Origin: Oopsacas minuta
Taxonomy: Eukaryota; Animalia; Porifera
DNA: 64,000 nt
Assembly (NCBI GenBank): GCA_024704765.1
Contig: JAKMXF010000343.1
Coordinates: forward strand, 682,001 to 746,000
Reading direction: 5' to 3'
In this document: positions 3,001-59,795 of the stretch, piece by piece
Layout of the letters: each line of letters starts with the position of its first letter
Position numbering within the stretch: position 1 is the first letter of the stretch
Made by a program: the position numbers and the translations under genes
The notes under the pieces: generated by a model
What the model saw: the letters and a program-made list of their open reading frames with translations, nothing else
Databases searched by the model: none
What the model was told of the DNA's origin: nothing

Positions 3001-3055
3001 TTCAATCGTTTATTTGACCGACTTACCGTATAGCTAGAGAAAAAACTTTGTTANA

Positions 3056-3087
3056 CATACATACATACATACATACATACATACATA
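3056..3087. repeat. (CATA)8 microsatellite next to an N
   Basis: Direct reading; N at 3054. Confidence 0.95.
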
Positions 3088-3088
3088 C

Positions 3089-3107
3089 CTGTCTCTTATA
3101 CACATCT
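3089..3107 (+). other. Tn5/Nextera mosaic-end adapter (library contamination)
   Basis: Exact 19-mer CTGTCTCTTATACACATCT, 35 bp from the N and directly after a microsatellite. Confidence 0.95.
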
Positions 3108-11065: not shown

Positions 11066-11169
11066 GTATGGTATATGTGTATTATCTGTATTTGTTTGAA
11101 TTCCCTTTGAAATACATTCCTATTAATTATATTCAATATGCTCTAATCATTATATTACTTGTCTTGTAG
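11066..11169 (+). other. Predicted 104-nt 5'-UTR intron of the TRPM gene
   Basis: CAG|GTATGG donor, CTCTAAT branch-like motif, pyrimidine tract, TTGTAG acceptor 1 nt before the ATG. The upstream in-frame segment has a stop and no ATG. Confidence 0.6.
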
Positions 11170-11170
11170 A

Positions 11171-15616: not shown

Positions 15617-15799
15617 TAGTAGAGTCTCCTTAACACGTATACCAGGGGACTGCCAAAATTCGTACTCCTTTTTCGAAGTACGTATAATCCGAACTAATTT
15701 AGATAGAAAAGGCATTGTGAAGGGGACTGATATACTGTACAAATTTGTACTCTAATCCGGAGTTACGTCTTAATCGTGTTCGTTTTAACGAGACTACTG
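15617..15799. mobile_element. pogo/Tigger-type MITE; related copy at 53836-54016 and partial copies at ~15337 and ~49078
   Basis: Ends (C/T)AGTAGAGTCTC...GAGACTACTG flanked by TA; internal similarity between the copies. Confidence 0.7.
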
Positions 15800-16212
15800 T
15801 ACTTGGGTATTTGAATACGCTGAATCCGAATATTACATTTTCAAGTTTCTCATATGATATATAAATTTATTGTTGGTTTATTAACATAATGCAAAATGAT
15901 TATCCAAATTTCTAAATATTGGTAGAGATTTTCTCTCAACAGACATGTACATACCAAATTGCGCTGAATCCGGTGGCCTAAGGGAAAATTACGTCAGCAT
16001 GGGCGGTGATTTGAGATTTTTACTTTTACCTAGTTATTTTGTTGAAATGAGTAGGTTTCACTGTGGCTATATATTTATGAGTCTAATTATACGCATATTC
16101 ACTCACTAACTTGTCATTTTACACGATTTTGATAAATGATCATGCTTTCAATGTACCAACGTTTGTCATACTATAATTGATGGATTTTCTTTACATACTA
16201 TTTTGAGTTAAA

Positions 16213-17652
16213 TAATGCCAACTACAATTGCCATTGTATTAGCCACAATTGACCACTTAAGCGACACATTTTGAGGTGGTAAAATCTAGCTAACGTCCAC
16301 AATAATAATTTAAACCAATTTTATGTGGTATGCGTGATCAGTGTAATTTTCTCCGATCTTTCAAGTGGTCACTTCAACACCTTTTATCCATTGTACGCAA
16401 ATTGTCTCAGGAATGTAACAACATTCCATTCTCCAATTTTGTCCTCACCCTATCCCTATCGAGTGATCTCTCTTTTTCCAAACTACAGGAATAACACTTA
16501 GTTTATGAAATTTGTCCAAATTTCATCTCAGAAGGGAGCTTCACAGTACTTTAGCACTCTATTCTCATGATGTGATCGTTTTGGCCCATATATTAATAAA
16601 TAAGCAGTCAAAATATTCCAATTTTCCAATTTCATATCACCCTGAGCTGCTAACTTCATATAAGAAATACGGGCTCGGAAGCACTTATCCATTGGTCCGG
16701 CTGAAACTGCGCGGAATTTTAAGTATAGTCGCCACAGTTAAATCCAAACAATTTTCAGTAATCAATAATTGCTGTTGCTGGTCTTCATGGTCTGTGAGGG
16801 TTTCGTCTACCCAGCGTATGCAGACTACAATATGTTCCTTGTTTGCAATGTCAGCGCACTCATCGGCCATTATCTTGAAAAATCCATTCCGAAATATGTT
16901 AGCACTAATCTGTCGAAGAATATTTAGGGCCATGATTTGCAAACATTCATTCTGGATTTCACTTGACATGTATTTATCCGTTTTCTTCTTCATCCAAGAC
17001 AGCACAACAGGTGAGTCGATAGCTCGTAAGGGTAACAACTGGATAAAGTTGCTGTCAGCACCATCTCCTTGTCCCTCAGTGACAAGCCTTGTCAAGCAAG
17101 AAAACGCAAATTTTGAAGAATTTTCCTAAACATCGCTTTGTTTTCTGCCTTATGCTGCTTGTGTTCTGTGCTGAGTTTTTCGCCAACTTCACCGGTTTGC
17201 TTTGGAAACTCCAGTATCTCTACAGCTTCTTTGTGACACCGGGTAGCCAAGTGTGTGCTGGACGCGGTAGTAGCATCCTTCCAGTTAGTATAACACGTTA
17301 ATGAATGCAGGATCGCGCTTGGTACTAGCAAGAATTTTTATTTCATGCTCTGCTGTCATACATAAGTTACATTGATCATCAGTTTTTGGCGTCAAAAAAG
17401 ACTTCACTCGATAGGGTGAGGACAAATTTTGAGAATGGAATGTTTTCAAGTTGCTGAGACATTTTGCGTTACTATAGACGAAAGATGTTAGAGTGACCAC
17501 TTGAACAACGGGGAATTTTCTACTGATCACAGATATCCGCATAAAATTGGATTAAATCAAAATTGTGGCAGTTAGCTGGATTTTAGCATCTTCAAAATAT
17601 GTCGCTTAAGTGGTTAATTGTGATCGACAAATCGTAATTGTGTTTGGTACTG
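16213..17652 (-). mobile_element. Internally deleted hAT element (TTF zinc finger/DUF4371, ZMYM1-like transposase remnant)
   Basis: ~90-bp imperfect terminal inverted repeats (16213-16305 vs 17560-17652). Remnants TNWKDA..H...H and KYMSSEIQNECLQIMA..FKIMADECADIANKEHIVVCIRWVD. Confidence 0.8.
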
Positions 17653-28570: not shown

Positions 28571-28797
28571 GTTCTGGTGTTCTTGTTTGGGCTATCCTAG
28601 CTAAGTTTTGAATGAGCTTCAGTAATAATTCATACTTCCGCAAAACAGGCTGGTCTAAAGGTCCTACATAGTCAGGTCAGGTCAGTTCTCAAGATTAATC
28701 AAGTCATTTTTAGGTCAATATCAGGTCATTTAACAATCAATTGAGCCCAAATGAGCGCAATTAACCAACTTAAGAATGAGGAAACCATACACTAAAG

Positions 28798-28919
28798 CAT
28801 CGGTTCTCAACCTTTTTTCCGCGGACCTCTTTGGTCCATCTTATGGGGTCCGCAGACACCTGCCAATAAACATAACAAAAACATTTGTAGGGCCACAGAC
28901 CCCAGGTTGAGAACCACTG
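28798..28919. mobile_element. 122-bp hAT (Buster/Charlie-type) MITE
   Basis: CA(G/T)(T/C)GGTTCTCAACC...GGTTGAGAACCACTG ends, same type as the 34497-36851 element. TSD matches only 5 of 8. Confidence 0.75.
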
Positions 28920-29082
28920 TGCTAAGGGATGGATGATATACGCCAGTTTTACTCAGTATATATTTGGGCTAGAGCCTATTCTATTGAAGATATATCATAC
29001 TCAAATCTAGTTGACCCTATTATGGAAGTAATTCAATTCAATTTACGAGTTAATTAAGTTAAGGAATAGCAAGGTAAGATTA

Positions 29083-30323
29083 TCAGAGAAGAATGAATAC
29101 CGTAAACTCCCTGAAGCCTGAAAATGAGTTGAATATTCTTTGAATTACCTGTTTTGTTGTGTATGATGTAGTTCTGGTCCAGGTTCTGTATCCTGTTTCG
29201 TCATTCACTTTTCTTTTCGATCCTGGCTTTTGTGGTTTAGGTATGTTGCGAGGGTTTGATACTTTAAGAAAACCTTGAGTTGGGATTGTAATATGCTGGG
29301 TCTTTGGGAGCACGTTAAAGTTGATGGATATGTGTTTGCGGTGTTGATGAAGTGTTTATTATTAGGTTCTTCATTTGCGTTCTTTCCATAGTGAAGAATG
29401 TATAGTATTCTTACACGGTTTCAGGGGACTAGGATCTCATATCAGTTGCTAATCTTGCATTCGTTATTGAGGAAGTGCATCCAGTCGGGAATTCAAGTTG
29501 ACTTTGGTGGTGATAGCACAGAAGACCCTTTAGTGGTATCAGTGAGATATTTGGAATTAGATTGTAGTCATCGAGCTCCAGGGGTCTAAGTTTCGTGCGT
29601 TTTGGTCTAGTCTGGCTATATCTGTATTTGAGTATAGGTTTGAATTCAAATGGTTCACGTTCAGACTTTCTGGGGAAGTAACAGATGTTGAGTATCTTTG
29701 TCGTGACTTCTTTAGAGTTATGCCCTAGTCTTATGAGTGAAGGTAGGTACTTCTTGAGTAGGTGAACAGGTCGTCTGATGGATCCGTTGCCATCTTAGAG
29801 GCTCGGTTGGCGCTGCTCTGGTATGTGTTTTTACACATTTTTCGTGATAGGTGGTAGGGGTGTGGAAGTAGAAGGACAGGTTGTCTGTATTTCTGAGCCA
29901 CATAGGGAACTGCTGATGGTCAGGGTTACACTTACAATTTGCGTCTCCTTTGGTTCAGTCTCTTTCAGGGTGTAGGGCCCAAGCGGTGATTCATGATGGG
30001 GTACGTACCCGCTAGGTCATCGAAGTATATTGTGAGTACCTTTCCTGGGGGTGGTTTGTGGGTGTTGAGGAGGAAGGCTGTGCACAGGCGGGCGAGTTCT
30101 CGTGCCAGTGCCCAGTGGTATGCCCATTAGGATTCCGACATCCTAGGTAGAAATTTAATCACCGTTAGTTGTAAATTGAATATTGGAGTTGTTAAAGGAG
30201 TGCTAGTTGCTTTATTTTGCGGAGATCAAGAAGTCAAACTCTTTGAATACCAGATTGTGTGGTATGTTGGGTAAAAGGCCTCAATGCTACAAGTGTATAT
30301 ATGTTCTGGTGGTCCCGGCCCGT
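29083..30323 (-). mobile_element. Penelope-like retroelement, 3' half of a decayed RT
   Basis: HIYTC(S)IEAFYP/NIPH (motif A), NIQF..NG....VGILMGIPL/ARELARLCTAFLL, LTIYFDDL (30016-30027), and a thumb-like ..SSANRASKM..LLKKYLPSLIRLGH. Multiple frameshifts. No GIY-YIG recognised. Lower boundary approximate. Confidence 0.85.
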
Positions 30324-30561
30324 GTATAGGATGTTTTTTATCAAACTAGCATAGTAACGGATTGTAAACAATGGTATTTAAAGTATTTAAAGTTGGAGTT
30401 ATAAACGGTGTGAAAAGGAACCAACTTTGTCCAATAGGGTGAAAGCCTCGTCTAGGATTCTGCAGTAATTGGCATAGGTGTCTTTCAAGTCTCTGACATT
30501 CATTAGAAAACACAAACCTGAATAGAATAAACAGTAAACAACAACAACAAAAGTACACATA

Positions 30562-31896
30562 CAAAGGGTATTCATTTAATTCGTAACTCTTAGAATATTT
30601 GTATTATATAAGTGAGATAAGCCTCAAATACTACTATAAATGTTCAAAGTAGTCTCCCTTGTGCTCAACTACAAGCTTCAAACGCTCTATCCACTTGAAA
30701 AATGTTTTCTTATACTCTTCTTGTCGTATGTCTCTGAGGTACCGTTGGATGGCCCTTCCAATTTGCATCCGTTCTCCAAAAACTGTACCTGCTAGGTGCT
30801 TTTTGAGCCCATCGGACAGCCAAAAGTCGCAAGGTGCTAGGTCAGAGCTATAGGGTGGATGTTTCAATTCCTCAAGACCTATAGAAGCAATCTTTTCCTT
30901 GACTTCCTTAGATTTGTGCGGTCTGGCATTATCATGCAAAATTTTGATTCCTCTAAGACCCGTGGCTGGCCGACGTTCAATATAATGGTTTTCGATTTCC
31001 GGAAGAACAACTGTTGCATAAAAGTGCTCGGTAACTGTTTGCCCCTTAGGAGTACAGATTTGACAGACCGGACCATGTGCATCAAAAATATGGTGTACAT
31101 TACTTTGGTGGCCCAATGATCCGGTCTTGGTAGTGCTGGGGGAGAACTCCCTTTTACAATCCATACCTTGTTCTGTTCTTTGTGAGTTGGCTCTGAATAT
31201 CTTATCCACGTCTCATCACCGGTACATATTTCAAATAGTCGCCTCTCATCACATTGATCATACTTTTCAAGCAATTTTTTTGCAATTCTCACCCGGGTCT
31301 TCTTTTGAGTCTGATTCAACAAATGTGGGACCCAACGTGAGCAAACCTTGGACATACCAAGATGCTTGGTCAGAATTGCATGAACACTTCCCATTGACAA
31401 GGTTAGGCTGGTAGCTAACTGCTCTATCGTAATATGGGGATCAGAGTCACACATTTCAGCTACAAGAGCAATATTGTTTTCAGTGGTAGCAATTATAGGT
31501 TGCCCCATCCGAGGGTCATCTTCAACCGACACCCTACCTTCACGAAAACGTAGACTCCACTTCTTAACGGTTGATTCCGAACAGGCCTCCCCACCATATA
31601 GCTGTACTAAATCTTGGTGGATATTCCTTGGAGTATCGCCGAGTAATGAGCGGATTTTGATGTATGCTCTTTGTTCAAGTAGAAATTCATTAGATTTCGA
31701 AGCCATAAATTCCTCTGTGGTTGCTATAACCTATCTTCAAAAGGGTGTATCTCAAAAAATATTAGATCAATTTCTACAAAGTATAGTGTCCTAAATAGAC
31801 GAAAATCTAAGCTATAAATTAGATGCAAATAGTAAATACATGTGGTTAAACAATAATAGCAATAGCTAGGGTTACGAACTACTTGAAATCCCTTTG
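30562..31896 (-). mobile_element. Full-length mariner (DD34D), one frameshift from intact
   Basis: 26-bp imperfect TIR CAAAGGG..TTCA..TA.TTCGTAAC, TA TSD. ATG 31706 to TAG 30634; WVPHLL, TGDETW, HDNARPH..HPPYSSDLAPCD (D34D). Single T missing near 31090. Inserted after intron nucleotide +7 of a DNMBP-like intron. Confidence 0.95.
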
Positions 31897-34496
31897 TATT
31901 TACCTATAGTTTGTTTCTCAATAACATTCCTTAAAGTGTCCTCTAGTCCAACTAACAGTACCTCTGAGACCTTGGAGATAGCCTCCATATTCCTAAATAA
32001 TATATTGATCTCCATTTGTGATATGTTGGCGTCTCGACAAGCTTGTACTACATATGTACATGTAAGGTACATGTGTTTAGAGAAGTCTCTCTCTGTTCGG
32101 ACTATCTCGTCTAGGACGTACTGTCTGTGTTCTAGACGTGTTAATCGGGGGTCTTGTGACGTTACTATGGTAGCTGAAGGAATGTCTCTAGATGGTATTA
32201 CAGGAAACAGTATATTTGTTTGTTTGTTTATTAACTGCCTTTTGGCATGTTTGTTTGTAAGTAAATTGTTAATTTGATTGCTTGTGTTTGTTTGTTTGTT
32301 TGTTGGCTTGTTTACTTAATACTTGTTTATTAGTTGTTTACCTTTTCTATTCTGTAATTCTATCTGTAATATTTGTATTTTGCTCTGCGTTTGTTGTATC
32401 TTGCATAACACCTCTTGCCTACAACAGGATCGAGAGGAATTTCTAACTGACTCTCCAAACCAATCAAAACACGTTCTTCTGCCTAATAACGAAACAGCAA
32501 ACAAATATGTAACAATTTCATATAGTGGTTCCCAACCTCTTTCACCCGTGGACACCTTATACCAAGACTCATGATGGGAACTAATTCTTTCAATTAAAAT
32601 ATTAAGACAACATTCCATACCTCCAATTGTGTATCTATAGCAGCTATAGGCTGCATTACTCTGTCAGGAGATCCATTCTTGGATCGCTTAGGGGTGCTAT
32701 AGGGAGAGGAGAAGTTTGGTGATTCATTAACTTGATCTGTGAATATTGTATCTTTCTCACCTAAGTTTATAATTATTAATATTTCCACAAGTTTTCGAAG
32801 GGTTAAACATATTTTAATACATGTTCCATGTAATTCAGATTATCTTGCAAATTTAGTAATTTAAGAAATGTATGTATTTCACACCTTTCAAAATTTGAAG
32901 TTTATTCTGTAAATCTTGTATTTCATGTTCACAGGCTACTTGTCGAACTTCTAATTGTTCTTCTTTAGCCGCGTCACAACCTGTTACAACCTAATAACAA
33001 GGAAACAAACATGTAAACAAAGTGTATATATGTTTGCTGTTTAGTTGTTTACCTGTAGCATTGTTTGTAAACAAGAATGCATCCTTTCTTCAACCTACGA
33101 AACAAGTAGACAAATATATTAAGGGGTGATTATTCATATCTTAACACCTTTGAACGGGGACATAATATATATCCACCGACTCCCTAAAGTGCTTCAGTGA
33201 CGTGTTATGTCCCAGTTTCCATGGTTACCTCATTGGTATTTGGCTACACCCCTCAATGAGGGAGGAGATCAACGAATGAGGCCTACTTTTCGGGTCGATG
33301 TGTACATATATATAATTAATAGGTGTCATAACATACTTCTAGTTTCCGTTCTATTTCATTAATCTGTTGCTGTAGCTCAATATCACCGTAGTATTCGTTA
33401 AGGTCTATCTCTGATTGAGGGAAGTGTCTCTGTTGGGTGGAGCTAACAGGAGATGAGGAGGAGGTTAGACCGTTGGCAGTCCGTCTTCTTGAGGCTCGCT
33501 GCTCTCCCTAGAAAGTTATATGAAATATTGTGAACCTCCACAAACGGTACTGGGATAGGGGTAGCATTTTATGGAAGTTACACTGTGTACAATATCATAA
33601 CATTCCTAAAGGATATACTAGTTGCTATGTAAGCGTATAAGATATTCTCATTTATAATTACCCTTGTGAATGGATCTTCTGTAGACTCCAAGTCAATAGG
33701 AGATTTCCTGGAGTCATCTGAGGAACACGAACCAAGACTTCTGCTCCTTATTGTTACCTTCTTATGTGTATTAACTTTCTAAACAGTAAATAACTAAACA
33801 AATAAACAAACAAATAAATAAACATTCTTAATTAACTTTGATATTTGGACTAAAATCACTCTTCTTAGCAACAGGAGACAGTTGTGGAATGTTAGGAAAT
33901 AAGTTAATATCTTCGTTGTTACTCTTGACCATCCAGAAGGGGTGAGGGCGATTGGGAGGTGTTAGAGGAGGAGAGAGTCTTATTTGTTCCTCTATTAAGG
34001 AGGGGTTAGGGTGCAAAAGGAGTCTGTTTTGAAGCTGTACTTACTCGGGGGATCTATATGATAATATTGTTTGTTTACAATATACATATGTATAACTTAC
34101 ACTCAGCATTTTGATTGGTTCTCTGTCTCATATTACACAGTGATTGAGTAACATCAACAGAGAGAGGATTCTGATTGGCTGGAGGAGGTGGAGCTATTCT
34201 CTTTGGGATAGGACCACCAGATGACCCCATGGGGTCATGTTGGTCCAAAGTAGGTAACACTTTAACGGATTTAGCGAAGGGGGAAGGGATGTGAGGCTTT
34301 GAATTCGGAAGATTTCTAGAATTTTGTATTGCAATTTTTGACGTAATTAAATTTGGCTGGTGTTTTGGGAAGTTTTCGTTTAACAGCTGGTTGTGGTTTG
34401 TTTGTTTTCCTTGTTTACTTTTATTTCCCTGGTAAACATCAAGTTTACTAGATGGTTGATACTTCTTCTCCAATTTTCCTATTTCATTCTCTAATT

Positions 34497-36851
34497 CAGT
34501 GGTTCTCAAACTTGGGTACGCGTACCCCTGGGGGTACGCCAGCACTTTTCCTAGGGGTACGCCGGTGTTTCACCTAATCATATCAATTCTGTAATAATCA
34601 TATACAAATATTTCGAGTTACACACTATCATGTCAACAGACTCAGCACATAGATAGTAATTTCATGCCAAATAATTAATATGTATCAGTTACAATGGTTT
34701 CATCACTAATTATTATCACCCTTGAATATTTAATGTTTGAGGTTATGCTAATTAAGGATTCCATTGTCCGTAATATGTGTCAACTCATATTGATTAGAAT
34801 ATCACACCCACCCGTGTATCGTATTGTTCTTATAAAATGGAAATTAGAAGAGTATTTCTTTGAGACCTTGACTTTATCACCAAATTCATATGGAATCTGC
34901 TAAGAAACAGAAGTATAATGAAGACTATATCAAATATGGATTTACATCCATACTTAAAGAGGGACGGGAACTACCACAATGTGTAATATGTTATAAGGTG
35001 CTATCTGAGGGCTCGATGAAACCAAGTTTTCTAAAACGCCATTTAAGCGGGTGCCACCCTAATCTTGCAGATAAGGATATAGATTTCTTCAAGCACCAAG
35101 AGGTAGGAGTAAAGCGAATCCGTATAGATCACAGAGGACAATTAAGTCAACAGACTCAAGCAGGTCTTCGTGCCTCGTACATGGTGGCTTTGCGAATCGC
35201 TCAAGAAAAGAAACCACATACGACTGCAGGAAATCTTATACTCCCCTGTTGTAAGGACATCGTGCACTGCATTTTGGGAGATAGCGCCGAAAAGAAACTC
35301 GCCTCTCTGCCTCTCTCGAACGACACAATCAAGCGCCGAATTACAGATATGGCAGATGACGTAGAGCAGCAGGTAGTTGCTGAGATTTTGGGAGCCCCGT
35401 TGAACACATTTTCAATTCAACTTGATGAGTCAACGGATGTTTCTAGTTGTGCACAACTACTGGTATTTGCACGGTACATCAAAGACGGGGACTTCAAGGA
35501 AGAGTTCCTATTTTGCCATTGTTTGGAAACAACTACAAAAGGAGAAGATGTCTTCCAGCAGGTCTCTGATTACTTTGATAGGATGGGACTATCCTGGAAG
35601 AATGTTTCTGCTTGCACAACAGATGGTGCTCCTGCTATGCTTGGAATTCATTCGGGATTTCGAGCTCGGGTAAAGACAGTGAATCCCGTTTCGAAACACA
35701 ATCACTGTATGATACACCGACACGCTCTTGCGTCTAAAACACTTCCATCCGATCTAAAACTTGTTCTTGATGATGTTGTCACCATGGTCAATTTTATCAA
35801 GTCCAGTGCTCTTAATACACGTGTGTTCCGCCTATTGCGCCAAGAATTAGATATTGACCATCAGAATTTGCTGTTCTATACTGAAGTTCGTTGGCTCTCA
35901 CGAGGGAACATGCTCTCTCGAGTATATTCACTGAAAAACCAATTGCTTGAATTCTTTGAACGAGATGGGAAAGAGAAGTCAAAAGTATTCTTCGGCAAAC
36001 TCTCAGACAAAGAATGGCTGAAAAAACTCGCCTACTTAAATGATATCTTCTCGCGGATCAACTTGCTCAACAAGTCCCTCCAAGGACGGTTTACTATCGT
36101 GGTTGATTGTGTGGACAAGATTCGGGCATTTATTATGAAGCTATAACTCTAGGAAGCAAAGTTAACCGTGGGAAAGTTCGATTTTTTTGAAAGCCTCTCA
36201 GCAACTCTTGGAGAAGAGGGTACTACAGATCAAAGTATAGGTGCTCAAGTAAAGGCTCACCTCTCAGCAATGCGAAATGAATTTCAAACTTACTTCCCAG
36301 ACTTGAGCGACCTGGACATGAAAATGATTCGAAATCCATTTAGATGCGATGTAGGTTCTATACCAGACAGAGTCCAAGAGGAATTTGTTGAATTAGTCAA
36401 TGATTCTATTGCCAGAGATCAATTTGAAACACTCGCACTCACAAAGTTCTGGTGCGAAATGAGCTTGATATATCCCAACGTGGCAGATAGAGCAGTAAAA
36501 ATATTGTTGATGTTTCCCAGTACTTACCTTTGTGAATAAGGATTTTCAGCGCTATTACTAATTAAAAACAAATTTCGAGCGCGGTTGTCTGTGGAAACTG
36601 ATCTCCGTCTGGCCCTTTCAAAAACTGTGCCACGAATTGATAGCCTGATACACAACATGCAAGCACATCCTTCCCACTAATTTATTATCTACTTTATTAA
36701 TATTGCTAGAATAAAAAACACTTTTATTTTTCACAACTGGGTAAAAGGGATTGTAAACCTAATATTTACAATGCAGGCCATTTTAAGGGGTACATCACAC
36801 ACAAGATCCAGCTTGAGGGGTACGCAATGAGAAAAAGTTTGAGAACCACTG
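34497..36851 (+). mobile_element. Full-length hAT transposon, Buster/ZBED5-FAM200 type; 596-codon transposase with three nonsense codons
   Basis: 17-bp perfect TIR CAGTGGTTCTCAAACTT and GGGTAC subterminal repeats. Frame 34890-36680 has no frameshift: PQCVIC..LKRHL, QLDESTD, TTDGAPAM, HCMIH, EVRWLS, STYLCE*GFS. Stops at 36144, 36150, 36537. Right flank TTCTAGAT fits NTCTAGAN; left copy matches 5 of 8. Confidence 0.95.
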
Positions 36852-38269
36852 TTCTAGATGGTCAAATTCAGGTGATAGTGGCTCTAAGTGGTCGAATTGG
36901 GATAGGTTAGAGTCTTTCGTGTGTTCATTAGTGACTGGGAAGTTGGCATACACCTGGTCCGCAGGTCCCGGTGCGAACATCTGTGAATTAGCGTATGGGG
37001 AGAGTTTATCTTTTGGGCTATCCAGACCTAAAATAGAGAATTTGTTATATACTTACCACCTTTTTGAGGTAATAATAAGTAATAGCGGGATTCTTGGCAG
37101 GAGATATCACCTATCGAAATGTGGGACGAATCCAAATTTTGCAGGATTTGGCGTTTAAAATAACCAGGACATATATACAGATAGAAATAATTTATTCATA
37201 GCTCAGCTCTACTAGAACACATTTTTTGCACAGATTAGTGTTACGTATATTGAAATCACGAAAATTTGAAGAATCAAGTTGAGTTATTCCATTTCAGGTA
37301 ATCTACAGTCGAAAAAGGAAATGCTGGCGTGGAAATCGAACCGAAGGCAACAGGTTAAAAGCAACTGATCTTAATAACAATGCTGATGAAACACAATGAT
37401 TAACACCGATAGAATGCGATAAAAAGCTCTACTAGAGCTCAGCTCTGTATATAGTATTTCATACGAATATTCGCTAACCTTTATTCGTTCTGGGTGTACA
37501 TATAAATTAGGATAGAGACCAGTTCTACCATTCGTAAACCCAATCGACCAATTCTCATCCACACGAGACAATCTATAGATAACATCGCCGATGGAGAGAT
37601 TCAAATCATCCAGCTGTCCCGTGTCCAATTCATCAGTTGCAACAACGGATTCAGGTTGAAAGAATTCAACGAATGCGGCAGGTACATATCCAAAGGCCTA
37701 GTTGGTAACTAGGATACCTTTACACCAACTTTCATCAACAATTTCAACGGCAGCGATGACGTCATTTTGTGCTAGATTGAGTTCATAGTCTTGTTCTGCT
37801 TTAAAGGAATGCGAGGCTCTTGCGAAGTTCATTTGTTTAGAAAAGCTATTTGTAAATAACAACAAGTCCAGCAGAATTAAAGGTGTGAAAATATGATTAA
37901 ATATATGCAAAATATTCACATTTATAGTCCCAGTTCAATGGCTAGTAAATAATCATATAAACAAACAAACAAACAAACAAGATAAATAATAACAAAATAA
38001 GATCTACATGTAGTAAACAACAAAATAAACAAATCCACAATCTATTCAGTATAAAAGCAAAGCTCAAACAACAAACAACAATAATATCTATCCAGTAAAC
38101 ACAGGGGTTAAATTAATTCTACATAATTATCGGGGAACAGTCCTCTCATCCCATTGAACTCACCTACCCACCAACCTTCATCTATTTGCTCAATGTTATT
38201 GATAACGTCATCACGTCAAAAGTTAGTTCATCTTCATCTGTAGCTTAGATAGAGATTGTATTTGCGTTG

Positions 38270-38500
38270 TTAATTGTTTGTTTGTTTGTTTATTTGTTTA
38301 TTTGTTTGTTTATTTGTTTGTGTATTTGCCTGTGTATTTGTATACTTGTCTGTCTGTTTGCTTGCTTGTTTGTGTATTTGTGTATTTGCCTGTTCGTCTG
38401 TTGTTTATGGTATTTGTGTTAGTAATTGTTTGTTTGTCTGTTTGCTTGTGTATTTGTTTATTTGCCTGTTTGTCTGTTGTTTATGTTATTTGTTTATTAA
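38270..38500. repeat. Degenerate (TGTT)n/(TATTTG)n intronic low-complexity tract
   Basis: Direct reading; it produces the spurious F/V/C/L-rich ORFs 38274 and 38278. Confidence 0.9.
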
Positions 38501-39904
38501 TAATGCATAAATAATAGTAATCAAACCTGATAAACAAATACAGCTCTTGCAGTAAGAATACCACTTTCACGTCATCAGGTTGTTGTATCACTTGTTGTGG
38601 CTCAGGAACTGATTCATATGTAGCCTCTTCGTTGTTAGCTGTTGGCTCAAAATATGTTTGTTCATTTGGATATCTGACACATAGAAAGTAAACATAAACA
38701 AAGTTGTGACGAAAACAGTAAATTCATGTTATATCGAAGCTCAAGGGACCCTGATAATTAGTTCATATAACCGATGGAATATATGTTACTGCTATTTGTA
38801 CAATTTCACACTTCGATATAAGCGGATATTTATATGTAACTAGAAATATTTTAATACTATATGGTAACTAAGGAAATCGTGAAAGCATTCGTAATACGAA
38901 CTGAAAATAGTAGCACTAATACTTAACACTTTATGGCAAATAAGGCTGTAGAATGTTCAAGCGAAATATTCACATACAACTTAAAAGGGAGCCAATCAGA
39001 TTTGAGAGGTGAAATACTGTAAATGATTATTTGAAATACATTCCTAATCCCAATATAGTTATCATGATATATATTAAGAAATAATACAGGAGTTATGTGT
39101 ATAGTGTAACCTCCACATACGGTGTAACATTTTCGGCGTCTCTGGGACTCCGTATATAGAGGTTGCACTGTGTGAAATAACTAGTCTTACTCTTGGGTTA
39201 CTGGTGATTCTTCGTACAGAGCCTCTGGGTCATCAATTGGTTGTTGTATCGGCATAGGAGGGAGAGGGGGGTTGTACGGCAGTCGGGGTTGTGATGCTGG
39301 TGCTGGGGCTTGGACAGTCTCTATTGGAGTCTAAAAGAGTAAATTGGTGACATACATAGACCGTCGCTAATACGAACAGAAATTTCCATTCTTTAAGATT
39401 ATTGAATGAATTGAAACAAAAAGTATTATAGAATATTAAAGTACAATTTAAGAAACGATAAAAATGCTGACAACACATGTAATAGCAAACAGATATTACG
39501 TCACAGGAAGTATAGCCCACAGAAATTGTATATGTGAATAATCAAGGTATTGTTTACTAGTAACAAATACGAATAAATAATAATAAACAACGAAATATTA
39601 CTTAAAATACAAACTTCTTAGATTATTAAATTCTACACAAATTGGAACTGATAGCTATTACAGCATAGCAACTAATTCTATACAAGGAATGTGGCTAGTT
39701 ATAACTGGAACTAATTTACATATTGAAAGCCATCTGACCTAACACATCTGTAATTCTGTGAGACAATAGTCTCGTGGTAGAGTTCAAGGAAATGTGATTA
39801 GTTGTAACTTTATATTTCATCACTTAACACCTGAATAATTAATGTATGAACTTGTATAAATACAGTCTGTAAATGAGAATAATCATAAACAGAACAACAA
39901 ACAA

Positions 39905-41071
39905 ATGGCCACCAAATACTCAGATGAAATTCCTACCAACCATTTCGAACAAGCGGAACAGAAGATCAATTCCACCTTCGAGAAGATTATTCGGATTGCG
40001 ACAGAGAGGAGAGATCAGCTGCTTGTCCAGCTGATCGATAAGAAGCAGGACTATCTAAGAAAGGAGAACACACGACAGAAACAATTAGCAGACCTGGAGA
40101 AGATGATCAGACAATTAATGGAAACTAGCATTCAACAGAATGAAGTAGTAAAGTTCCAAGAAGATCAAATAAAGAATTGGAAAAAGGAACAAAAGAAATA
40201 CGAAATAGAAACACCTATCCCAATCCCTTCCTTCAATAGTGAGTGTCTAGACTCTCTCCTAGAACAGCTGGAGAAGTTGGGGTCTATTCAGGATACAGCT
40301 GTACTCTACAGAAACAAGACAGGGCCAATCAGAAGGATAGGAAAATATGGAAGGGAGAAAGGAGAGCTGACTTACCCTCATGGACTAGCTCTAGATGGAG
40401 ATAAGATCTATATAGCAGATCATAACAATCATAGAATACAGATCTTCTTTACAGAAGGTAAGTTCATTCATGAATTTGGTAAAGGGGCGCTAAAGTATCC
40501 ACACGGTATAGCATTAAATAAGGAATGGGTGTTTATAAGTGATTATAGACTTAGTGTTATATTTAAATTCTCTAAAACAAATTACAAATTAATTAAGAGT
40601 GTTAAGGGAGGTGTTAGTACCCCTTGTGGTCTAACAACTGACACAAATGGAGAAGTGTTAGTTGCAGATTCTGATAATAATAGAATTGCAGTATTCAGCT
40701 CTGATTTAAAATATATTAGAGAAATAGGAAAAGACAAACTTATAGAACCGCGTGACGTCAAAATAAATAATAATAAGATATTTGTAGCAGACAATAATGA
40801 GATTAATAATATACACATATTCTCTAAATCAGGTGATTTATTGAAAAGTTTCATAAAATTAGAATATGGAAGAGAATGTATTTTTCTGTGTTTTGATTTG
40901 TGTAATAATATTATTATTAGCGATTGTTTGGTAAATTCAATTAATATATTTACTAAAGATGGACAGCGGATACACAAAATTAAATGTAATTCTCCTACAG
41001 GAATAGTTGTTAATAATAACTTTGATATTATTTGTGTTAGTTTTAGTGATAATGTAATAAATATATATTAA
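39905..41071 (+). CDS. Intronless 388-aa coiled-coil plus NHL-repeat (beta-propeller) protein, TRIM-NHL-like without RING or B-box; nested antisense in a cortactin intron
   Basis: Intact ATG-TAA ORF. N-terminal helical coiled coil; NHL repeats LTYPHGLALDGDKIYIADHNNHRIQIF, LKYPHGIAL, STPCGLTTDTNGEVLVADSDNNRIAVF, LIEPRDVKI. TATAAATA about 45 nt upstream. Confidence 0.9.
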   Translation: MATKYSDEIPTNHFEQAEQKINSTFEKIIRIATERRDQLLVQLIDKKQDYLRKENTRQKQLADLEKMIRQLMETSIQQNEVVKFQEDQIKNWKKEQKKYEIETPIPIPSFNSECLDSLLEQLEKLGSIQDTAVLYRNKTGPIRRIGKYGREKGELTYPHGLALDGDKIYIADHNNHRIQIFFTEGKFIHEFGKGALKYPHGIALNKEWVFISDYRLSVIFKFSKTNYKLIKSVKGGVSTPCGLTTDTNGEVLVADSDNNRIAVFSSDLKYIREIGKDKLIEPRDVKINNNKIFVADNNEINNIHIFSKSGDLLKSFIKLEYGRECIFLCFDLCNNIIISDCLVNSINIFTKDGQRIHKIKCNSPTGIVVNNNFDIICVSFSDNVINIY

Positions 41072-42507
41072 TTATATTGTTGTTTACTTGTTGGTTTATT
41101 ATTTATTAAATTATTATATTCACACTTGTCCTTTTCTATAAATTAACATTCCTAACCGTTTCCACACGTGGACCCCTATACTAATTACAACACATTATGT
41201 GTATCCTCCCATATTTGAGATCCAGTGGACAACTTGCTGTCCTCCATGGTCCAAGTTGTAAACAGATGTCATATGGTATCAAGAATTAAGATGGCTGTAC
41301 TTAAGGAAATAAGTTTGAATTCTAACCTCGTATGCGTCTTCAGAGGTGTCATAAAGTACTTCACTATCTGGAATTGGTTCCGGTTCCATTATCTGAACTG
41401 GAACTGAAACTGGAACTATAGGAAGAGGTCTTCGTATTGGTTCCTCAGGTTCTTGTGGTTGCATATCTGCCATTTTGGGAGGTGTTGCCATTTGAATGAA
41501 TTTAGATGGAAGTGGCCTAGAAATACACATTGTTTGTTTGTTTGTTTGTTTATTTGTTTATTATCAAAGAAATGTAATGAGAAAAGTGGACAGGTATTAC
41601 TCAGGAAATTCGTTCACTATTTGTCCGTCTGTTGTTGTTCGTATTTACGAGGTTACAGCAAACTAGCTTAATTGTTTATTTGTTATTTCTTTGTTTGTAT
41701 TTACCTAACAATCTTTGGTTCATCAACACTAGTTTCTTCTGTATCATCATCAACAGGTAAGGTAGCATTAATTTCTCTTTGTCTAGCGGCCTCTTCTGCT
41801 TCTTGGAGTCTTCTCCTCTCCTTCGCTTCATTTGCTCCCTGCTGAGTAGTACTGTCTTGGTCTACTGACATTTGTTCGAATTTAGCGAATAAACCTGACT
41901 TGGCGCCTTTGGGTTTTGTTCGAACCTATAAACGTAAATAACAATAATAATAATAATTAATGTGTACAATTCACACTTCGATATGAGCGGGTATTTCTAT
42001 ATATTCGTGTTAGATATTACAGAAGTTGACTGTAATTGTATGAAAATATTTTGGTAGTTGTAAACACGTGTTTAAAAGTGGCGTATTGTGTCAGATAAAA
42101 ATGTGTCCTCACTGTCCTGTAAGTATCGTAGTCAGCACAACAACAACCTCTGGTTTGGGAACAGATTTAACATCCATCATATCAGAAAAGCTTCCAGCTG
42201 ATCTGTCCATCCTATCCTTCTCTACCCCGTACCTCCCTCCGAAACCCTTAGAGTGGTCTGTCTGTGATGAATGAGCGGACAGGTCTGATTGGTAATCGTG
42301 TCCAACAGCTGATCTATCCATCCTATCCTTCTCTACGCCATATCTATAATGTATGCATAACTACATGATATGTGGGAGTTTTCTAGAGATTATGGGAGCT
42401 ACAGGAATAGCCACATGGTACACAGAGGTGCTACAATATGTTTAATCACATATTTACTCACCTGCCACGTCTGCTAAGTTAATTTATAGTTTCGAATAGG
42501 TCTTGTG

Positions 42508-43142
42508 TAGACATGGGGTAAAATACATATGTACTTGTATTTGAGAGTATTGAAATATTATTTTCAAGTATTTGTATTGTATTTATATTTTAATTTTCTC
42601 TTAATGAGAGTATTTGTATTTTGTATTTAAATACTTTCAAAAAGTACTTAAAATCTTCAAATACTTTATAAATACAATCAAATATTTACTATACACACAT
42701 AATAAGTTCCAGTTATTCATATATGAGGTAGATGAAAGTATGTTGTTAACCCAACAACAAAGTCAAAGTTCCACTCAATGATCTCCAGATTTTTCGATGT
42801 CCATTAGGTGTTGAAGGCAACTTTTCTGCTAAATGCAAGCTATGCCAATCAGAAATATCAGTTTCTACTAAGGTTAGATTAAGTAATATAAAAGTGAATT
42901 GCATATTCAACATCATTTGTCTATTAAATATAGACGGATACGGAGGATGAGAATTTTGTTAATATAATAACCATGGTCCGGACAGAACATATTAGAATTT
43001 GCATCGGTTTTGGCGAATTGTATATGTGTTTGTAATTAAATACATTCCAAAGTATTTGTATTTGTATTTGTATGTTATTTGAGAGTTTCACAAGTATTTG
43101 TATTGGTAATAAATATTTTTCAAGTATTTGATCCCATGTCTA
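42508..43142. mobile_element. hAT-type MITE
   Basis: TAGACATGGG(GT/ATC)AAATAC TIRs, GTATTT subterminal repeats, 8-bp TSD GTCTTG(T/G)G. Confidence 0.85.
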
Positions 43143-43304
43143 GTCTTGGGTGTGGTATGGATGGTGTCTCTACTGCCGTGGTCAGCAGGGCTAGTAGAAT
43201 TTGGCTGATACTGCTGGTGATTGTATTTTGTGGTTGACGATCGGTCTGCAGATATCTACTAGGTCTTTGGCCTGGTGTATGCAGGTGTTGTGTTTTAGAC
43301 AATA

Positions 43305-44631
43305 TCAGTGCGTTCAATAAGTCTTGCGGTTCATGTATATCTCAGGAATTAGTCAAGTAATATATCTAACTTTCATATATTATAAGCCCATATAGTTAAA
43401 CTCCATATACTGAAAGTTTCAAGCTTATTCAATACAATTATGAATTTTTGAGATAATTACGTGTAGTCAATTCATACCTACTGTTCAATTTATGGCTTCA
43501 AAGGATGATAATTTCAACCTCAAATGGCGAGTTTACATAGAGCTTCGCACAATACTCAAGATCCAGCCCGTACAGATCTTCAGCGAGTTACAGGAGATAT
43601 TTTGCGTGGATTGCCCTTTCAGATCTACTGTAGAGTGATGGGCTGGCCGTTTTAGATCTGGTGATGCTGATGTCACAGATTTGCCTCGATTTGGAATACC
43701 GGTATCCGCCACCACTTCAGAAGATATCGCACTCATTGAAAGTATGGTCATGGAAGACAAGTGCATTACTGTCAATCAGTTAGAACAAAGAATAGAGATT
43801 TCATCGGGAGCTATTCATACAATTCTGACGACTGAGCTTGGCTACCGATCGAATTGTGGGAAATGGGTCCGCATAAGCTCAGTGAGAATCAAAGGTTGGC
43901 ACGACTGAATATTGCCAAGAAACTCTTGGAAGCTTATGAGAACTGTGATTCTAGACACATAACAGAGATTATTGCAGGTGACGAGACGTGGGTGTACTAT
44001 TCAACACCATATAGCAAGGATAAAAAGCGATCATGGGTGAGGGGCGACGAACAATCGGCGAAAATTCCTAGGCCCGACTTCAGAAAACCTAAGATTATGT
44101 ATATCATCTTCTTCAGTAGTCATGAAATTGTCTTGCAATTACCTTGTGAGAGTGGCAAGGCTGTTACTGCTACTTTCTTTACAGAGCAAGTGCTCCCAAA
44201 CTTGATAAAAATATAGAAAAGTACCGCCCGAAACCGGAACTCAAGGAATGAAGATGTTAATTGATAACGCCAGTTCCATACAGCTAAGCTTACCAAAAAT
44301 TTCTTGGATATAGAAGGGTTAGAATTACTTCCCCATCCATCATACTCACCAGACCTAGCTCCTTGTGATTTTTGGCTATTCCCCGAGCTTAAAATCTACC
44401 ATCAAGGCACAGATTTTAACACATTACAAGTACTCGGAACGGACCTGTACCAATACTTTCAAATCCATCCCCGAAGAAGAGTACAGAAATGTGTTTTACA
44501 AGTGGGTGGAAAGTTAAAACTTTGTGTATCTGCAGGAGGGGATTACTTTGAATGAATAATATAGTGAATTAGTGTATATTGTGTTTTGTATCATATTCTA
44601 TATCACCCGCAAGACTCATTGAACGCCCTAG
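43305..44631 (+). mobile_element. Full-length, defective mariner (DD34D-type) inserted in the PLE RT
   Basis: TIR ..G(T/G)GCGTTCAAT(A/G)AGTCTTGCG, TA TSD. ATG 43492; GKWV/PHKL, AGDETW, HPSYSPDLAPCD. Many frameshifts. Removal restores the PLE frame (KPHS-YCLK). Confidence 0.92.
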
Positions 44632-45677
44632 TATGAGTGCGGTTTTGTGTGTTTCACTTTAAAGTACATGGTGGGGACTCAATCATCTGGGTTGTTAAGC
44701 GGGGTGTCAGGGTTTACATTGGTTAGTGCTTGCTTTAGGGATGAGAATGCTTTAATGTACACCATGGGCGGTGGTTGGTTTTCCTCATGGTTGAGAATTC
44801 CCTGGAACGGAGTTAGGAAAGGGTTGCTGGAATGTTAGTCCATGTTCCAATAGTTCCTGCAGGATGAAGCCAGTCTTTATGTTTGCTGTATCGTGTAGGA
44901 AGACTGGAGGGGCTATATATTCCCAGGTAGATGTTAGTTTAGGAAGTATGAAAAGTTTTTGTACAATATTTTAAAAATATCTGGAGTAATGGAATATTTC
45001 TTTTTAAAAGTCTCAACAAATATTTGGCTGAAGATGTTATATTAGAAATGTGTTCTACAAAATTTAGGCTACATCAGCTTATACACATAAATCCTTCAAT
45101 GATGTTGGAAAATATAGAATAACTCATTTTTTCATTATTTCCCATATGTAAATTACGACATTTGTGGTCATAGTCATGTGGTTTAGCTGCGACATGGCCT
45201 ACTATGAACACGGCCCGCTAAGCAAGAATTGCCAAAATAATATCCAGGCCATTTATTACATTCTCTTTGATCATGAAAAATTGCAGTTATCATTCAAATT
45301 CTACTATAAATAGGTTCCACATACGGCGGAGAAATCTGGAATACTTTTGATCCTACATTTCAGGTTATTTTAACCACAATGACGCAATCAAATTCACCTT
45401 CAATTATGGTAATTATTTTACAAATAAATACCAATATGATCGAAAACGCACATATCTCATGAAATGAATCATGATTCGTATTAACTTGGCACAAAAACAC
45501 AATAGAAAGACCGTATTAAATAAACTCATAAAAATTGTTAACAATTATGATATATCGCTTACATTTTTTGATCGAATTTCTTCTTTTTTCTAGGATTGAC
45601 GTTTTAACGTTGTTTTTACGGCGAATATCACTAAATGTGATAATTTAACAAGTGTTCATAAAAATGAGGATCTTCTG

Positions 45678-55156: not shown

Positions 55157-57989
55157 AAGAGACTACTCTACATAAGGCCTAACTGTAACATGTGGATTAT
55201 GAACAAGGGATTGGTGACCCGATGGTAAGGGTCCATTTAAAATATCATTAACTGCTTGTGTTTAACATGTGCAAGCCTAGGATACACAAACTTAACAATA
55301 ATCTTGAGAAAACTTTACTAGGGATGCATTTGAAAATGAAATTCTTAATGACAGATAATGACTAAACTCATTAGTAAACATATAAAATTACATGTAAACA
55401 ACCCAAAATGATAAATATTCTCCAAAACATATATGTAAACACTGAAAAAACAGATTCCTTATATATAGCTCACTATAGTATAGTATAGTTTTTGTAATAC
55501 AAAAACCTCATACCCTCATACCCTCATTCCAAAACGGTGATTTTCATTAGGCCTAACAAATAACCTTTCCTCGAACATAGAAAAGCTAATACACGAAAAC
55601 TGTACTAAAGTTTAGTTGAGCTATATATAAGTTATTTGTTAATTGCATTCATTTTGTGATATTTCTTGTGTTCTCTTTGTCACACATCCTTCTGACGTTT
55701 TCCCAAACGTCATTTATCTTGCTAGTTACATTACATCATGCCTAACACCTGTTCTGCACCAGACTGTACAAGCAACTATAACCCGAAGAACATAATAACT
55801 GTATTCACGATGCTGATGAACTGAGATATCTTGCCTACGAGCTCTACATAGAGATGATATAGACGAACTGGAAGTTGTGTAGGTGTGCTCTAAACATTTT
55901 ACAGGAGATGAAGTCGAGACCACAATCAGGGTGACGAATGGAGACCGAACTAACATAGAGATACCCTGCAACCGTCCAAAGCTGATAGATAGAGCTGTAC
56001 AGTCTACACTACCAGGATATCTTACTATTCAACTCACTCCTCCGCCCAACGCAGCCGTCTCTCTCTCGAGGACAAGGAAGACAAAATGCTCAATAATGCT
56101 GTTCACCCAGTCTATAGTCTGGAGTAGAAGAGAAGGTGAAGTTCAAGATTCACAGTTTCCAAGATTTACAAGCAAATTTACCTTTTCTTTCAGTTGACTA
56201 CATGGTCTACATGGTATCCGAACGAATATACATTAGTTTTTATGCGTCCTCGTTTCGATAATTATAAGATTGAAGTGAATACGTTTATATCAGTAGAATT
56301 TGACTTGTCCATTAGCTCGTATTATAATGGTGAACGTTTCCCAATTCCTTGTGTAATTAACTCTATGTGATATTCGACAACGTGAATCAGTTTTTAGTGA
56401 TCTTTCTGCTTTGTCAACCGTAGCACCACCTCGGAGGTTATTCCCAATAGTTCTGATAACGTATCTCATATTGTATCTGCCGAAAGCAATATCCAACAGG
56501 TCATTGATAACATGTGCGATTCTGAATCTGGTAACGACTTAATTCGTTGCCCTGAGCTTTCTAGGCTTCAATTTGTTCTTTCCAGCTCTAATCTAGATAC
56601 AGATGATCCTACCAAGACTGTCTTCGCTATTATAGTATCTATCTTGTTTAAGAAGTGGTCGTGTATCGTCGGTCTATTTACATGTGCTCCTGTATCTGCT
56701 AAGAAGTTATTCGACACTATAATATCTTGTATTCGTAATGTAGAACATTGCGGCTTATTCGTCGAAATTATCTCCACCGACAACTATCCCCTTAATGTGA
56801 AACTTTTCAAATTGTTCTCTCCTAATCACAAACTGGAGACCCGACTACCAAATCCTTGTGATATATACAGAAGTCTTTTTCTTACATTTGACTTGTACAC
56901 ATTCTGAAGGCTAGTAGCAATAACTGATTAAATCAATAATCTGGAAGTAAGTTCTTTTCCTATACTGATTTGAATTGTATTTCTATCGATTAAGGCGAGT
57001 ATCCTCTAAGAATATGTTATGTCTCTTTTCGTGACATCTGTATGCTATATAATTCTGATAGGAGAGAGCTTAGCGAGACTTGCTCTACGTTTGACTTCTA
57101 AATCATGTTATCCTTCCAATCTTGAACGTCAAAATGTTAAGTTAGTCCTGAAGGTTGTGCATGAATTGCTGTCTTAGCGATCCAAAATGAAAAACGTCCT
57201 CCTGCTCTTAAGTCCGACGCTTCTGATTTCGTTGGGATTCTCCTATCTCTCTTGAAGATTTCCAATGTTAATATTCCCTTCCCACATACTCGCTTGAATG
57301 AGCCATTGTTTAAACTAGTAACATTCAATGATGACTGCTATATCTTACTGACTCGAGTTGTCTACTTGCTTGAAGCTTGGCAGTCACTCCCTGAGAAAGG
57401 TGATAAACTGAGCAAGCAAACATTCACCAGCTTCAAACATGCTTGTCTCGTGTTACCACAGATAGCAAATTTCCTAACTTAGAACTGTGGCTTTTAATCG
57501 ATATAATTATCGGATTGAGAAGAGTTTCGTATTCTGGTGTTTGATACTGTCTATGATGAGTCCTGGTGAAGCGAAAGTCTTGCATCTACTCGAATAGTGT
57601 TTCCCAACCTGGGTCCACAGCTTGTGATAGGGGTTCCACAGAATTTCGATAAATGGTCTATAGAAAAATACGTTGGGAAACACTCTACTATATTTTATTG
57701 ATATGCACCTTACTTGTAGTATTCTAATTGATCACTATATAGTTATCTTTCTATATATTTTCAATCATACTTTCATTACTTGCATTATTTTATGTTTGTA
57801 TAATCTAGGGTATGCACTATAAAAACATAATTATTAGTAAATTAATCGAAATATTCTATTACGAATGCTACAAAAACACTATATTTATCTCAAATTAGCT
57901 TACGCCAGCAATTATTCGTTACTATTCGGTAACCCACCCCTAGTCAAAGTCCACATGTTGCTGTTAGGCCTTATGTAGAGTAGGCTATG
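55157..57989 (+). mobile_element. Decayed P element (THAP-domain transposase)
   Basis: ~60-bp TIRs ending CATAGCCTACTCTACATAAGGCCTAAC. ATG 55738: MPNTCSAPDC..VCSKHF..AVQS (THAP), ISTDNYPLNVKLF, LTFD, LERQNVKLVLKVVHE. No TSD detected. Confidence 0.88.
57595..57685. mobile_element. 91-bp hAT-type MITE inside the P element
   Basis: AGTGTTTCCCAAC...GTTGGGAAACACT inverted ends. Confidence 0.65.
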
Positions 57990-59795
57990 TATTGTATAGC
58001 AGTTAACAAATATTCTTCGAGTTATTGGAGTATATTGTACTTATGACGTCGCAAGAATTTTAGTAAAGAGCAAAAATCTTGTGACTTCATAAGTAAGAAA
58101 CACATAACCGATTATTCTGAAATTTTACGGAAGCAGAGACCTGTTATTAGATTGCGTCACAGCGAATTTCAGACAAATTCCTTGATGGTGATGAAATGGT
58201 TGGTTGAGTTGAAATGGAATTCCCACTATATAATTATATGTACTATATACACATTAGTCTCCATCATTTATCCCTTTTGTTATAAACAAGCATCCACTAA
58301 GTTCTTTAACGTCCGCCGTGTTTGCAAAAATCTGGCCAAATCGGATATTACAACATCTGTTTTTGTTAGTGATTCTCAAAATACATTTCTTTCGGAAAGT
58401 CGGAAAATTTCGCATTTACTTGATGATTATGCAAATACTGTTTTCATTCACAATGGATACTAATCGAATTTTAACATAAATCATAGTTTTTCCTTATTAT
58501 TCTATCGTTCTTAGCAAATTCATAAATTAACAAACCAATTAGTTATTGAAAAAAATTATTCACCAATAGAACCAAAATTTCTGATTTTCCGTCAGTCGAT
58601 ATTACTTTCTAAGAGAAAAGTAGGTTTTGCGATGGGATGAAGGTGTGAAATTTTGATATATAAATTTTCTCCGGCTGCCCAAGTTGCAATACGATCTACC
58701 AGGTATGAATCTCTATATGCTATCTGCTACGTTCACTACTGTCTGAATTACAAATACTTTATTATAGTCTGCCTATTTTTGAGCACAGTGAATATAGTCA
58801 TTGTATGATTTTATTTATCAATAATGCACTTTCAGTTACCTGTGAGAAATATTTGGTCATATTCATATTGATAGCTCTGACAAAACATGATCCGTTTTAC
58901 ACGTATTTCAGGTAATATTATTCGAGGTAAATCTCTGAAAACCACCAGTACTATAACGTTATGGAACCATTTGCGATCTTGTCACCACCAAATATATGCT
59001 TAAACAATATATGCTGAAAAGGAAACCAATCTAAAATTTACTGGAACAAGAGGAATCGAACAAAATCCAGAATGATCACATAATTATGAATGTACAATTT
59101 CCACAGTCACAATTACGCAATAATTCTAATAGATTGTACAAAAATGGAAATTTTCCAAAATTTTCCAATATTATGAGAAATTCTTAAATACTCAAGGCGC
59201 GAAGTGCCGAGATTATTAACCAAATGCCATGTGCGTCTTGATATACATCAAAATCCCTCGATTTTTAAAGGAAATCTAATACTAAATCATAAGTAAGTCT
59301 CATCTTTCACGAATCTCACGATTTTGAAAGTTCCCAGGGCAGGTTGTGTGCACTGCATACCAGCTACAGTATCACCCCAGAAAAGTCAATAAATGTAGTT
59401 TGGATGGAAAATGGATAATAAATTCATAAAATTTACACTAGTATATGAATCCGAGGCACTTAATGCGGAATATATCGGTTCAAGACCACTAGTTTTTCTA
59501 CTATCAAACTAAATTCTTAAATCGAATAAGTAAAACTTATGCATATTTATAATTATCAACCCCTCATAACTGTTTCCTTGATATTTTCTCGCAATTCCTG
59601 GATTTCCTAAATTTTCACTGGATTTTAAATCTTCTATGAAAATAATACGATTTTTTCCCTCAATTATGAGAAAAACGTCCGAAATTTCCAATATTCCCTG
59701 GATTTAGTAATTATTCCACTAGGGCATAGGTCAATCCGAGGAAATTCCAGGAATCACTAGATAGTTAACAAGTATATATATTGTTAATAAGCCAC

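Follow-up and report, generated by a model that had tools for sequence, protein, structure and literature searches.

A block of host genes duplicated from a cortactin/DNMBP-like locus lies within a decayed Penelope-like element of the sponge Oopsacas minuta

We analysed a window of 64,000 nucleotides from the glass sponge Oopsacas minuta (positions 682,001 to 746,000 of contig JAKMXF010000343.1, assembly GCA_024704765.1; G000:C343:682001-746000 in our numbering), in which a block of host genes interrupts a degenerate copy of a Penelope-like element (PLE). The PLE lies on the minus strand in two parts, a 5′ part from approximately 44937 to 42469 and a 3′ part from 30318 to approximately 29150, which adjoin exactly when the 12,150-bp block between them (30319-42468) is left out. 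The block is a duplicate of G000:C12:42967-51606, a locus on another contig with complete cortactin and DNMBP/Tuba-like genes. The finding of this donor locus bears out the original prediction, made from the letters of the window, that an intron-containing, multi-gene host duplicate splits the element. The assembly searched comprises 61,460,524 bases in 365 contigs.

The split element

The comparison with a related PLE copy on contig C79 (L003), which retains a 472-amino-acid open reverse transcriptase (RT) frame with a Pfam RVT_1 match above the cut-off, locates the split to the base. The protein of L003 reads ..TQDIFETISELSK up to the split point and PGTPEHIYTADIEAFYP... beyond it, while the upstream part of the window copy stops with ..TQDLFETIN*LSR at 42469 and the downstream part opens with PGPPEHIYTCSIEAFYP at 30318. 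The two parts adjoin against L003 without a gap, as expected from the earlier proposal that they are collinear halves on the same strand. The limits first given for the insert, 30324-42468, hold at the upper end, while the lower limit is 5 nt off and lies at 30319. The claim that deletion of the insert joins the halves in frame also stands, yet the join at 30323/42469 retains five host bases and a duplicated C, which add two codons. The spacing of 23 residues between an upstream D and motif A, offered as typical of PLEs, is thus found only in that join; it is 21 in L003.

The minus-strand translation of 30318-29241 is a decayed reverse transcriptase extending from motif A to the C-terminus. 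The 5′ part is broken into three pieces by two nested DNA transposons, one mariner-like and the other a 640-bp hAT-type miniature inverted-repeat transposable element (MITE). An abundant repeat family at 28645-29152, which is 80-87% identical to dozens of copies, abuts the 3′ end of the PLE. A second abundant family occupies 45193-45676, about 0.25 kb upstream of the 5′ part; it has dozens of copies at the same level of identity, with a cluster on contig C122.

Is the element Penelope-like? The relatives of this PLE family in the protein database keep, in alignment, an N-terminal DKG motif and a C-x4-C-x2-C motif, and the DKG motif and a Zn-finger-like motif are listed among the features of PLEs and their RTs (PMC8557442); the window copy is too decayed for the DKG motif to be visible. 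The ESM Atlas clusters nearest to the RT combine HTH_animal, RVT_1 and GIY-YIG domains, with template modelling (TM) scores of 0.61-0.64. No Pfam hit to GIY-YIG was obtained in L003, in a further locus of the analysis (L002) or in 11 relatives, in which a conserved C-x4-C-x2-C and a YLLH stretch remain. No Rfam match to a hammerhead ribozyme was found in the window at the gathering score, or in L003 and L002 at E<=1, where the loci may exclude the terminal repeats; hammerhead ribozymes are absent from some PLE clades (PMC8557442). Sequence searches of solved structures with the RT and with its family profile gave zero hits. We accept the label “Penelope-like” for this RT. In this family (L003 and window 29150-30318), the coding strand is strongly A/C-rich, and T, P, H, N and Y are frequent in the proteins, which lack the cysteines expected in the endonuclease region.

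Table 1. Features of the split element and of the host block, with their positions in the window unless a contig is named.
Feature	Position	Strand	Basis
PLE 5′ segment, N-terminal part of the open reading frame (ORF) up to ..VPTMYFKVKHTKP	44634..44937	-	tblastn with L003 ORFs and database relatives P0002, P0004
Nested mariner-like DNA transposon in the PLE 5′ part	43302..44633	+	90-92% identical genome copies; transposase-like ORFs on the + strand
PLE RT segment, ..AKDLVDICRPIVNHK..HPYHTQD	43149..43301	-	Translation collinear with L003 RT residues ~84-127
Nested 640-bp hAT-type MITE; terminal inverted repeat (TIR) TAGACATGGG, 8-bp target-site duplication (TSD)	42509..43148	.	Many 77-89% identical copies, all ending at 42508-42511
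PLE, final 40 bases before the block (TQDLFETIN*LSR)	42469..42508	-	DNA and protein alignment to L003
PLE 3′ part, with the RT from motif A onwards to the C-terminus, a Zn-finger-like and endonuclease-like remnant and a short tail	29150..30318	-	Frameshift-aware alignment to L003 RT; DNA matches to C79, C89, C317
Inserted host block, duplicate of G000:C12:42967-51606	30319..42468	-	Collinear BLAST matches
Cortactin-derived part, comprising the final 7 nt of one repeat exon, the last repeat exon, and the coiled-coil, Pro-rich and SH3 exons; pseudogenised	38100 (approximate)..42468	-	Pfam HS1_rep; frameshifts in pre-SH3 and SH3 exons against C12
NHL-repeat gene without introns, intact, lying antisense within a cortactin intron	39905..41071	+	Pfam NHL; multi-copy, dN/dS ~2 against C12 copies
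DNMBP/Tuba-like 5′ part: start codon, two SH3 domains, through the first two RhoGEF exons; pseudogenised	30319..37832	-	Stop, frameshifts, 353-bp loss
hAT transposon in DNMBP-like exon 2, post-duplication	34497..36852	+	Not in C12; TIR CAGTGGTTCTCAAAC
Mariner-like transposon, post-duplication	30562..31896	-	Not in C12; Mos1-type helix-turn-helix (Pfam); TA-flanked TIRs
NHL copies	Window 39905-41071; C12:44369-45541, 56391-57557, 15461-16627, 2958-4121, 72262-73422; loci L027, L028, L030	+ (window copy)	

The host block, its donor and its junctions

The block is collinear, in reverse orientation, with its donor on C12, and the BLAST match halts exactly at both PLE junctions; the block exons were searched one at a time. 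The two copies differ at 381 of the 8,177 aligned bases (4.7%), and are thus 95.3% identical. Collinearity is broken by two transposon insertions, by the loss of 353 bp of exon next to the hAT element, and by 136 bp that are extra in the window copy. The block retains its introns and contains the 3′ part of cortactin, the intergenic spacer, the 5′ part of the DNMBP-like gene and, in a cortactin intron, an antisense intronless NHL-repeat gene. Since the mariner-like and hAT elements within it have transposon ends and are absent from C12, they arrived after the duplication.

C12 is the native cortactin/DNMBP-like locus, with the genes complete on either side of the breakpoints. Its cortactin gene possesses the acidic DDW exon and further HS1/cortactin repeats upstream of the breakpoint, preceded by UBA1-like and glycosyltransferase genes. 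The DNMBP/Tuba-like gene, which starts about 270 bp past the cortactin stop, encodes two SH3 domains, RhoGEF, BAR and two further SH3 domains (Pfam), the architecture of DNMBP/Tuba. The missing cortactin repeats were not found elsewhere in the window and are located on C12. The cortactin and DNMBP pieces in the window are pseudogene fragments.

The junctions are equally precise. No PLE bases are missing at the insertion relative to L003, and one C stands on each PLE side (42469 and 30318), which amounts to a 1-nt duplication. The microhomology between PLE and donor is 0 nt at both junctions, where about 2 nt had been proposed, and the joins are blunt. The block begins within a cortactin exon, 7 nt before its GT donor, and its other end falls some 125 nt inside the short intron that separates two RhoGEF exons of the DNMBP-like gene; both limits agree with the original prediction. 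The earlier statement that the block has neither TIRs nor poly(A) was likewise confirmed: the ends carry no TIRs, with a local score of 9 compared to a mean of 10.7 after shuffling, and are free of nearby A or T runs. Neither the 5′-TC/CTRR-3′ ends of Helitrons nor a TSD beyond 1 nt is present at the block limits. On the donor, a splice junction follows 7 nt downstream of each breakpoint: a splice donor on the left and a probable acceptor on the right. A heptamer resembling a recombination signal sequence at the breakpoints was weighed by eye and dismissed.

Both junctions have support in sequencing data. Logan contigs from three runs of one sample span 30318/30319 without differences, two of them (1,340 nt) reaching 30369 and one (1,370 nt) reaching 30487. 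At 42468/42469, all 16 of the sampled 31-mers of 42380-42560 are present in two runs, and by arithmetic the chance that at least one of the 16 crosses the junction is ~0.97. These runs probably derive from the sample of the assembly itself, and the support is therefore independent of the assembler and not of the data.

No second composite copy and no shared junction exist in the 61-Mb assembly. Other partial duplicates of the donor locus, with different outer limits, lie on C310, C3, C37 and C12 itself. The one on C310 (1012584-1014859; L053/L054) is a 2.3-kb partial duplicate of the DNMBP-like gene that corresponds to C12 50162-52396 with 89-94% identity. We rejected it as a candidate for sharing the end of the block, because it continues through the right breakpoint and is thus independent. 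About 0.8 kb separates this duplicate from a hAT transposon whose TIRs are at 1009460 and 1011795. The NHL gene is covered, with varying flank, by a duplicate at C12:56107-58534, which spans 56107-58374 in a separate comparison, by a pair of copies on C3 and by a single copy on C37. A search of C12 and of the loci on C3 and C37 found no RT of the PLE family (the flanks at C310 were not included), and therefore the dispersal of donor-locus pieces is independent of the PLE.

The NHL gene differs from its neighbours in the block. An intact gene is present in the window and in seven or more further copies, whose outer limits differ, so that the family numbers at least eight copies. Between the window gene and two C12 copies, the non-synonymous divergence (dN) is 0.09 and the synonymous divergence (dS) is 0.042 (dN/dS ~2.1), with 82-83 non-synonymous and 7-8 synonymous differences (p ~1e-4). 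These values suggest diversifying selection in an expanding, fast-evolving NHL family, at the same time as the cortactin and DNMBP pieces beside the gene undergo decay. The duplication may thus be one step in the expansion of this family, with no bearing on retroelement biology.

Elsewhere in the window, a 1,050-amino-acid open frame on the plus strand (11159-14311) carries Ion_trans and TRPM2-like domains (Pfam), and appears to be an intronless TRPM-type channel gene.

Age and origin of the insertion

The two components of the composite have decayed to different degrees. In a frameshift-aware comparison with the RT of L003, the 889 bp of 30318-29430 show 63% amino acid identity, 11 frameshifts and two stops. 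Over some 3.2 kb, the block exons differ from those of C12 by five to six lesions that break the frame: three or four exons carry 1-nt deletions, and the remainder are a deletion of 4 nt and the hAT insertion together with the sequence lost beside it. One stop is also present. An equal age would predict approximately 1.4-1.7 frameshifts in the PLE part, and the Poisson probability of at least 11 is 3e-7 to 2e-6. Moreover, the MITE that sits 40 bp away from the junction shares only 77-89% identity with its relatives, as compared to the 95.3% identity between the block and its donor. The excess of frameshifts in the PLE part, together with the low identity of the MITE to its relatives, suggests that the PLE copy was dead and had already been hit by transposons well before the block arrived.

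How did the host block enter the element? We consider it probable that the event was a duplicative insertion at the DNA level, i.e., a dispersed segmental duplication that became joined to the ends of a double-strand break in the dead PLE, because the PLE is continuous to the base, the microhomology is 0 nt, the duplication is confined to 1 nt, and the insert is genomic throughout, including introns, spacer and an antisense gene. The capture of a genomic segment by double-strand-break repair was one of the two routes originally put forward, and it fits the evidence. In this sequence of events, which we infer from the junctions and the decay states, about 8.5 kb of chromosomal DNA would have been copied from the C12 cortactin/DNMBP-like locus, with its introns, the ~270-bp spacer and the antisense NHL gene. 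The copy would then have been joined at a double-strand break within the pre-existing, inactivated PLE copy on scaffold C343. The joining would have been free of homology, either by the end joining of a free fragment, or by the copying of the donor by a wandering break end followed by end joining, and would have left the blunt junctions and the 1-nt duplication. Afterwards, the block would have received the mariner-like and hAT elements, and its truncated copies of cortactin and DNMBP would have decayed, while the NHL gene remained intact.

That the PLE's own RT made the composite, by either of two routes, is improbable overall. If true, it would be the first demonstration, outside rotifers, of a PLE that acquired a multi-gene, intron-containing host block. 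In one of these routes, which was the other mechanism first put forward, the RT jumped from PLE RNA to an unspliced read-through transcript of cortactin and DNMBP, copied about 8.5 kb, and jumped back. Both host genes indeed share the orientation of the PLE, intron-containing host genes can be carried by PLEs (PMC3846280; PMC8557442), and read-through across the short spacer is conceivable. Nevertheless, the return would have to land on the very next PLE base, which nothing in the mechanism favours, and about 15 introns would all need to remain unspliced. The antisense gene and intergenic spacer within the block, the far greater decay of the PLE, and the lack of other composite copies also disagree with such a switch, and we regard it as highly unlikely. 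The other route, in which the block entered the source copy of the PLE as DNA and the composite then retrotransposed to its present site, is very unlikely: it has a precedent in the PLE-framed host genes of Adineta vaga, but the assembly lacks a second composite or a match to either junction, the block lies within the RT frame rather than between terminal repeats, and the ages of PLE and block do not match.

We assign a similarly slim chance to a DNA transposon—a Helitron, a Pack-type element or a composite of two transposons—as the vehicle that brought the block into the PLE. DNA transposons are abundant, with a hAT and a mariner-like element inside the block and another hAT near the C310 duplicate. 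However, the block limits show none of the ends or target-site duplications of such elements, the corresponding donor ends lie in continuous exon and intron sequence, and the two transposons inside the block are later arrivals, absent from the donor. Least probable of all, to the point of being nearly negligible, is an assembly chimera that fused C12-like sequence to the PLE. The PLE literature warns of assembly trouble at complex insertions (PMC8557442), and all of the reads come from one sample; a chimera would, however, require two false joins at adjacent PLE bases, and would leave unexplained the 4.7% difference between the block and C12 and the two transposons of its own. The read-derived contigs and sampled words at the two junctions, described above, also speak against the misassembly that had been held out as a possibility.

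Several points weigh against a DNA-level insertion at a break. The donor breakpoints, C12:42966/42967 and 51606/51607, both read G|GTG, and the mechanism does not explain these four shared bases; the chance of such sharing is estimated at a few per cent, and it may be a coincidence. The source of a free 8.5-kb fragment is not accounted for. The host genes are co-oriented with the PLE, as the RNA route demands, which by chance would be expected half the time. The PLE frameshifts were counted against a relative that is only 63% identical, and the window copy may descend from a source element that was defective to begin with. The order of events is read from decay counts rather than from an empty site (an uninterrupted orthologous PLE). 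Finally, the reads probably share their sample with the assembly, and their support concerns the junctions, with no long read across the whole block.

Comparison with known systems

Terminons are telomere-associated giant Athena-type PLEs of bdelloid rotifers, which lack an endonuclease and carry many intact ORFs. Like them, the composite unites a PLE with extra, non-PLE genes. Unlike them, the window copy lies 0.7 Mb into its scaffold, which has another match at ~1.0 Mb, it exists as one copy, and two of the three host genes in the window are broken fragments. Accordingly, the parallel with Terminons and PLE-borne cargo drawn in the original prediction is not sustained by the locus, where the PLE looks like an accidental, passive landing site.

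Another counterpart is found in Adineta vaga, where an intron-containing nonribosomal peptide synthetase (NRPS) gene lies between Penelope pseudo-long terminal repeats (pseudo-LTRs); an 8-bp TSD surrounds it, and the empty site has been proven (Arkhipova et al. 2013, PMC3846280). The present locus shows none of these features. In both cases, intron-containing host DNA has PLE flanks and a copy was added to a multigene family, here the NHL family. The cases differ in that the A. vaga gene is framed by pseudo-LTRs without internal PLE sequence, whereas the present block interrupts the RT frame of a copy that has long been dead, with the two adjoining parts on either side. Moreover, the composite is single-copy, and nothing here shows that a unit of PLE plus block has moved. 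As for Helitron- or Pack-type capture, the block has neither the defined termini nor the family-specific TSD of such events.

Dispersed segmental duplications are common in eukaryote genomes, and the locus resembles them, and the capture of DNA at breaks, most closely. An intact donor remains at another site, the insert and genomic DNA are collinear, introns included, the recipient is continuous, the junctions are blunt or nearly so, and transposon ends are absent. The find is ordinary. Its value resides in a dispersed segmental duplication that is resolved to the base, in a sponge genome that is very compact, with a known donor, blunt junctions and datable later transposon hits, and in the caution that retroelement pieces flanking host DNA need not mean retroelement-mediated capture. 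The experimental documentation of genomic DNA capture at double-strand breaks (PMC6368560) provides the nearest model, from which the present insert differs in being large (~8.5 kb) and in comprising parts of two genes together with the whole of a third.

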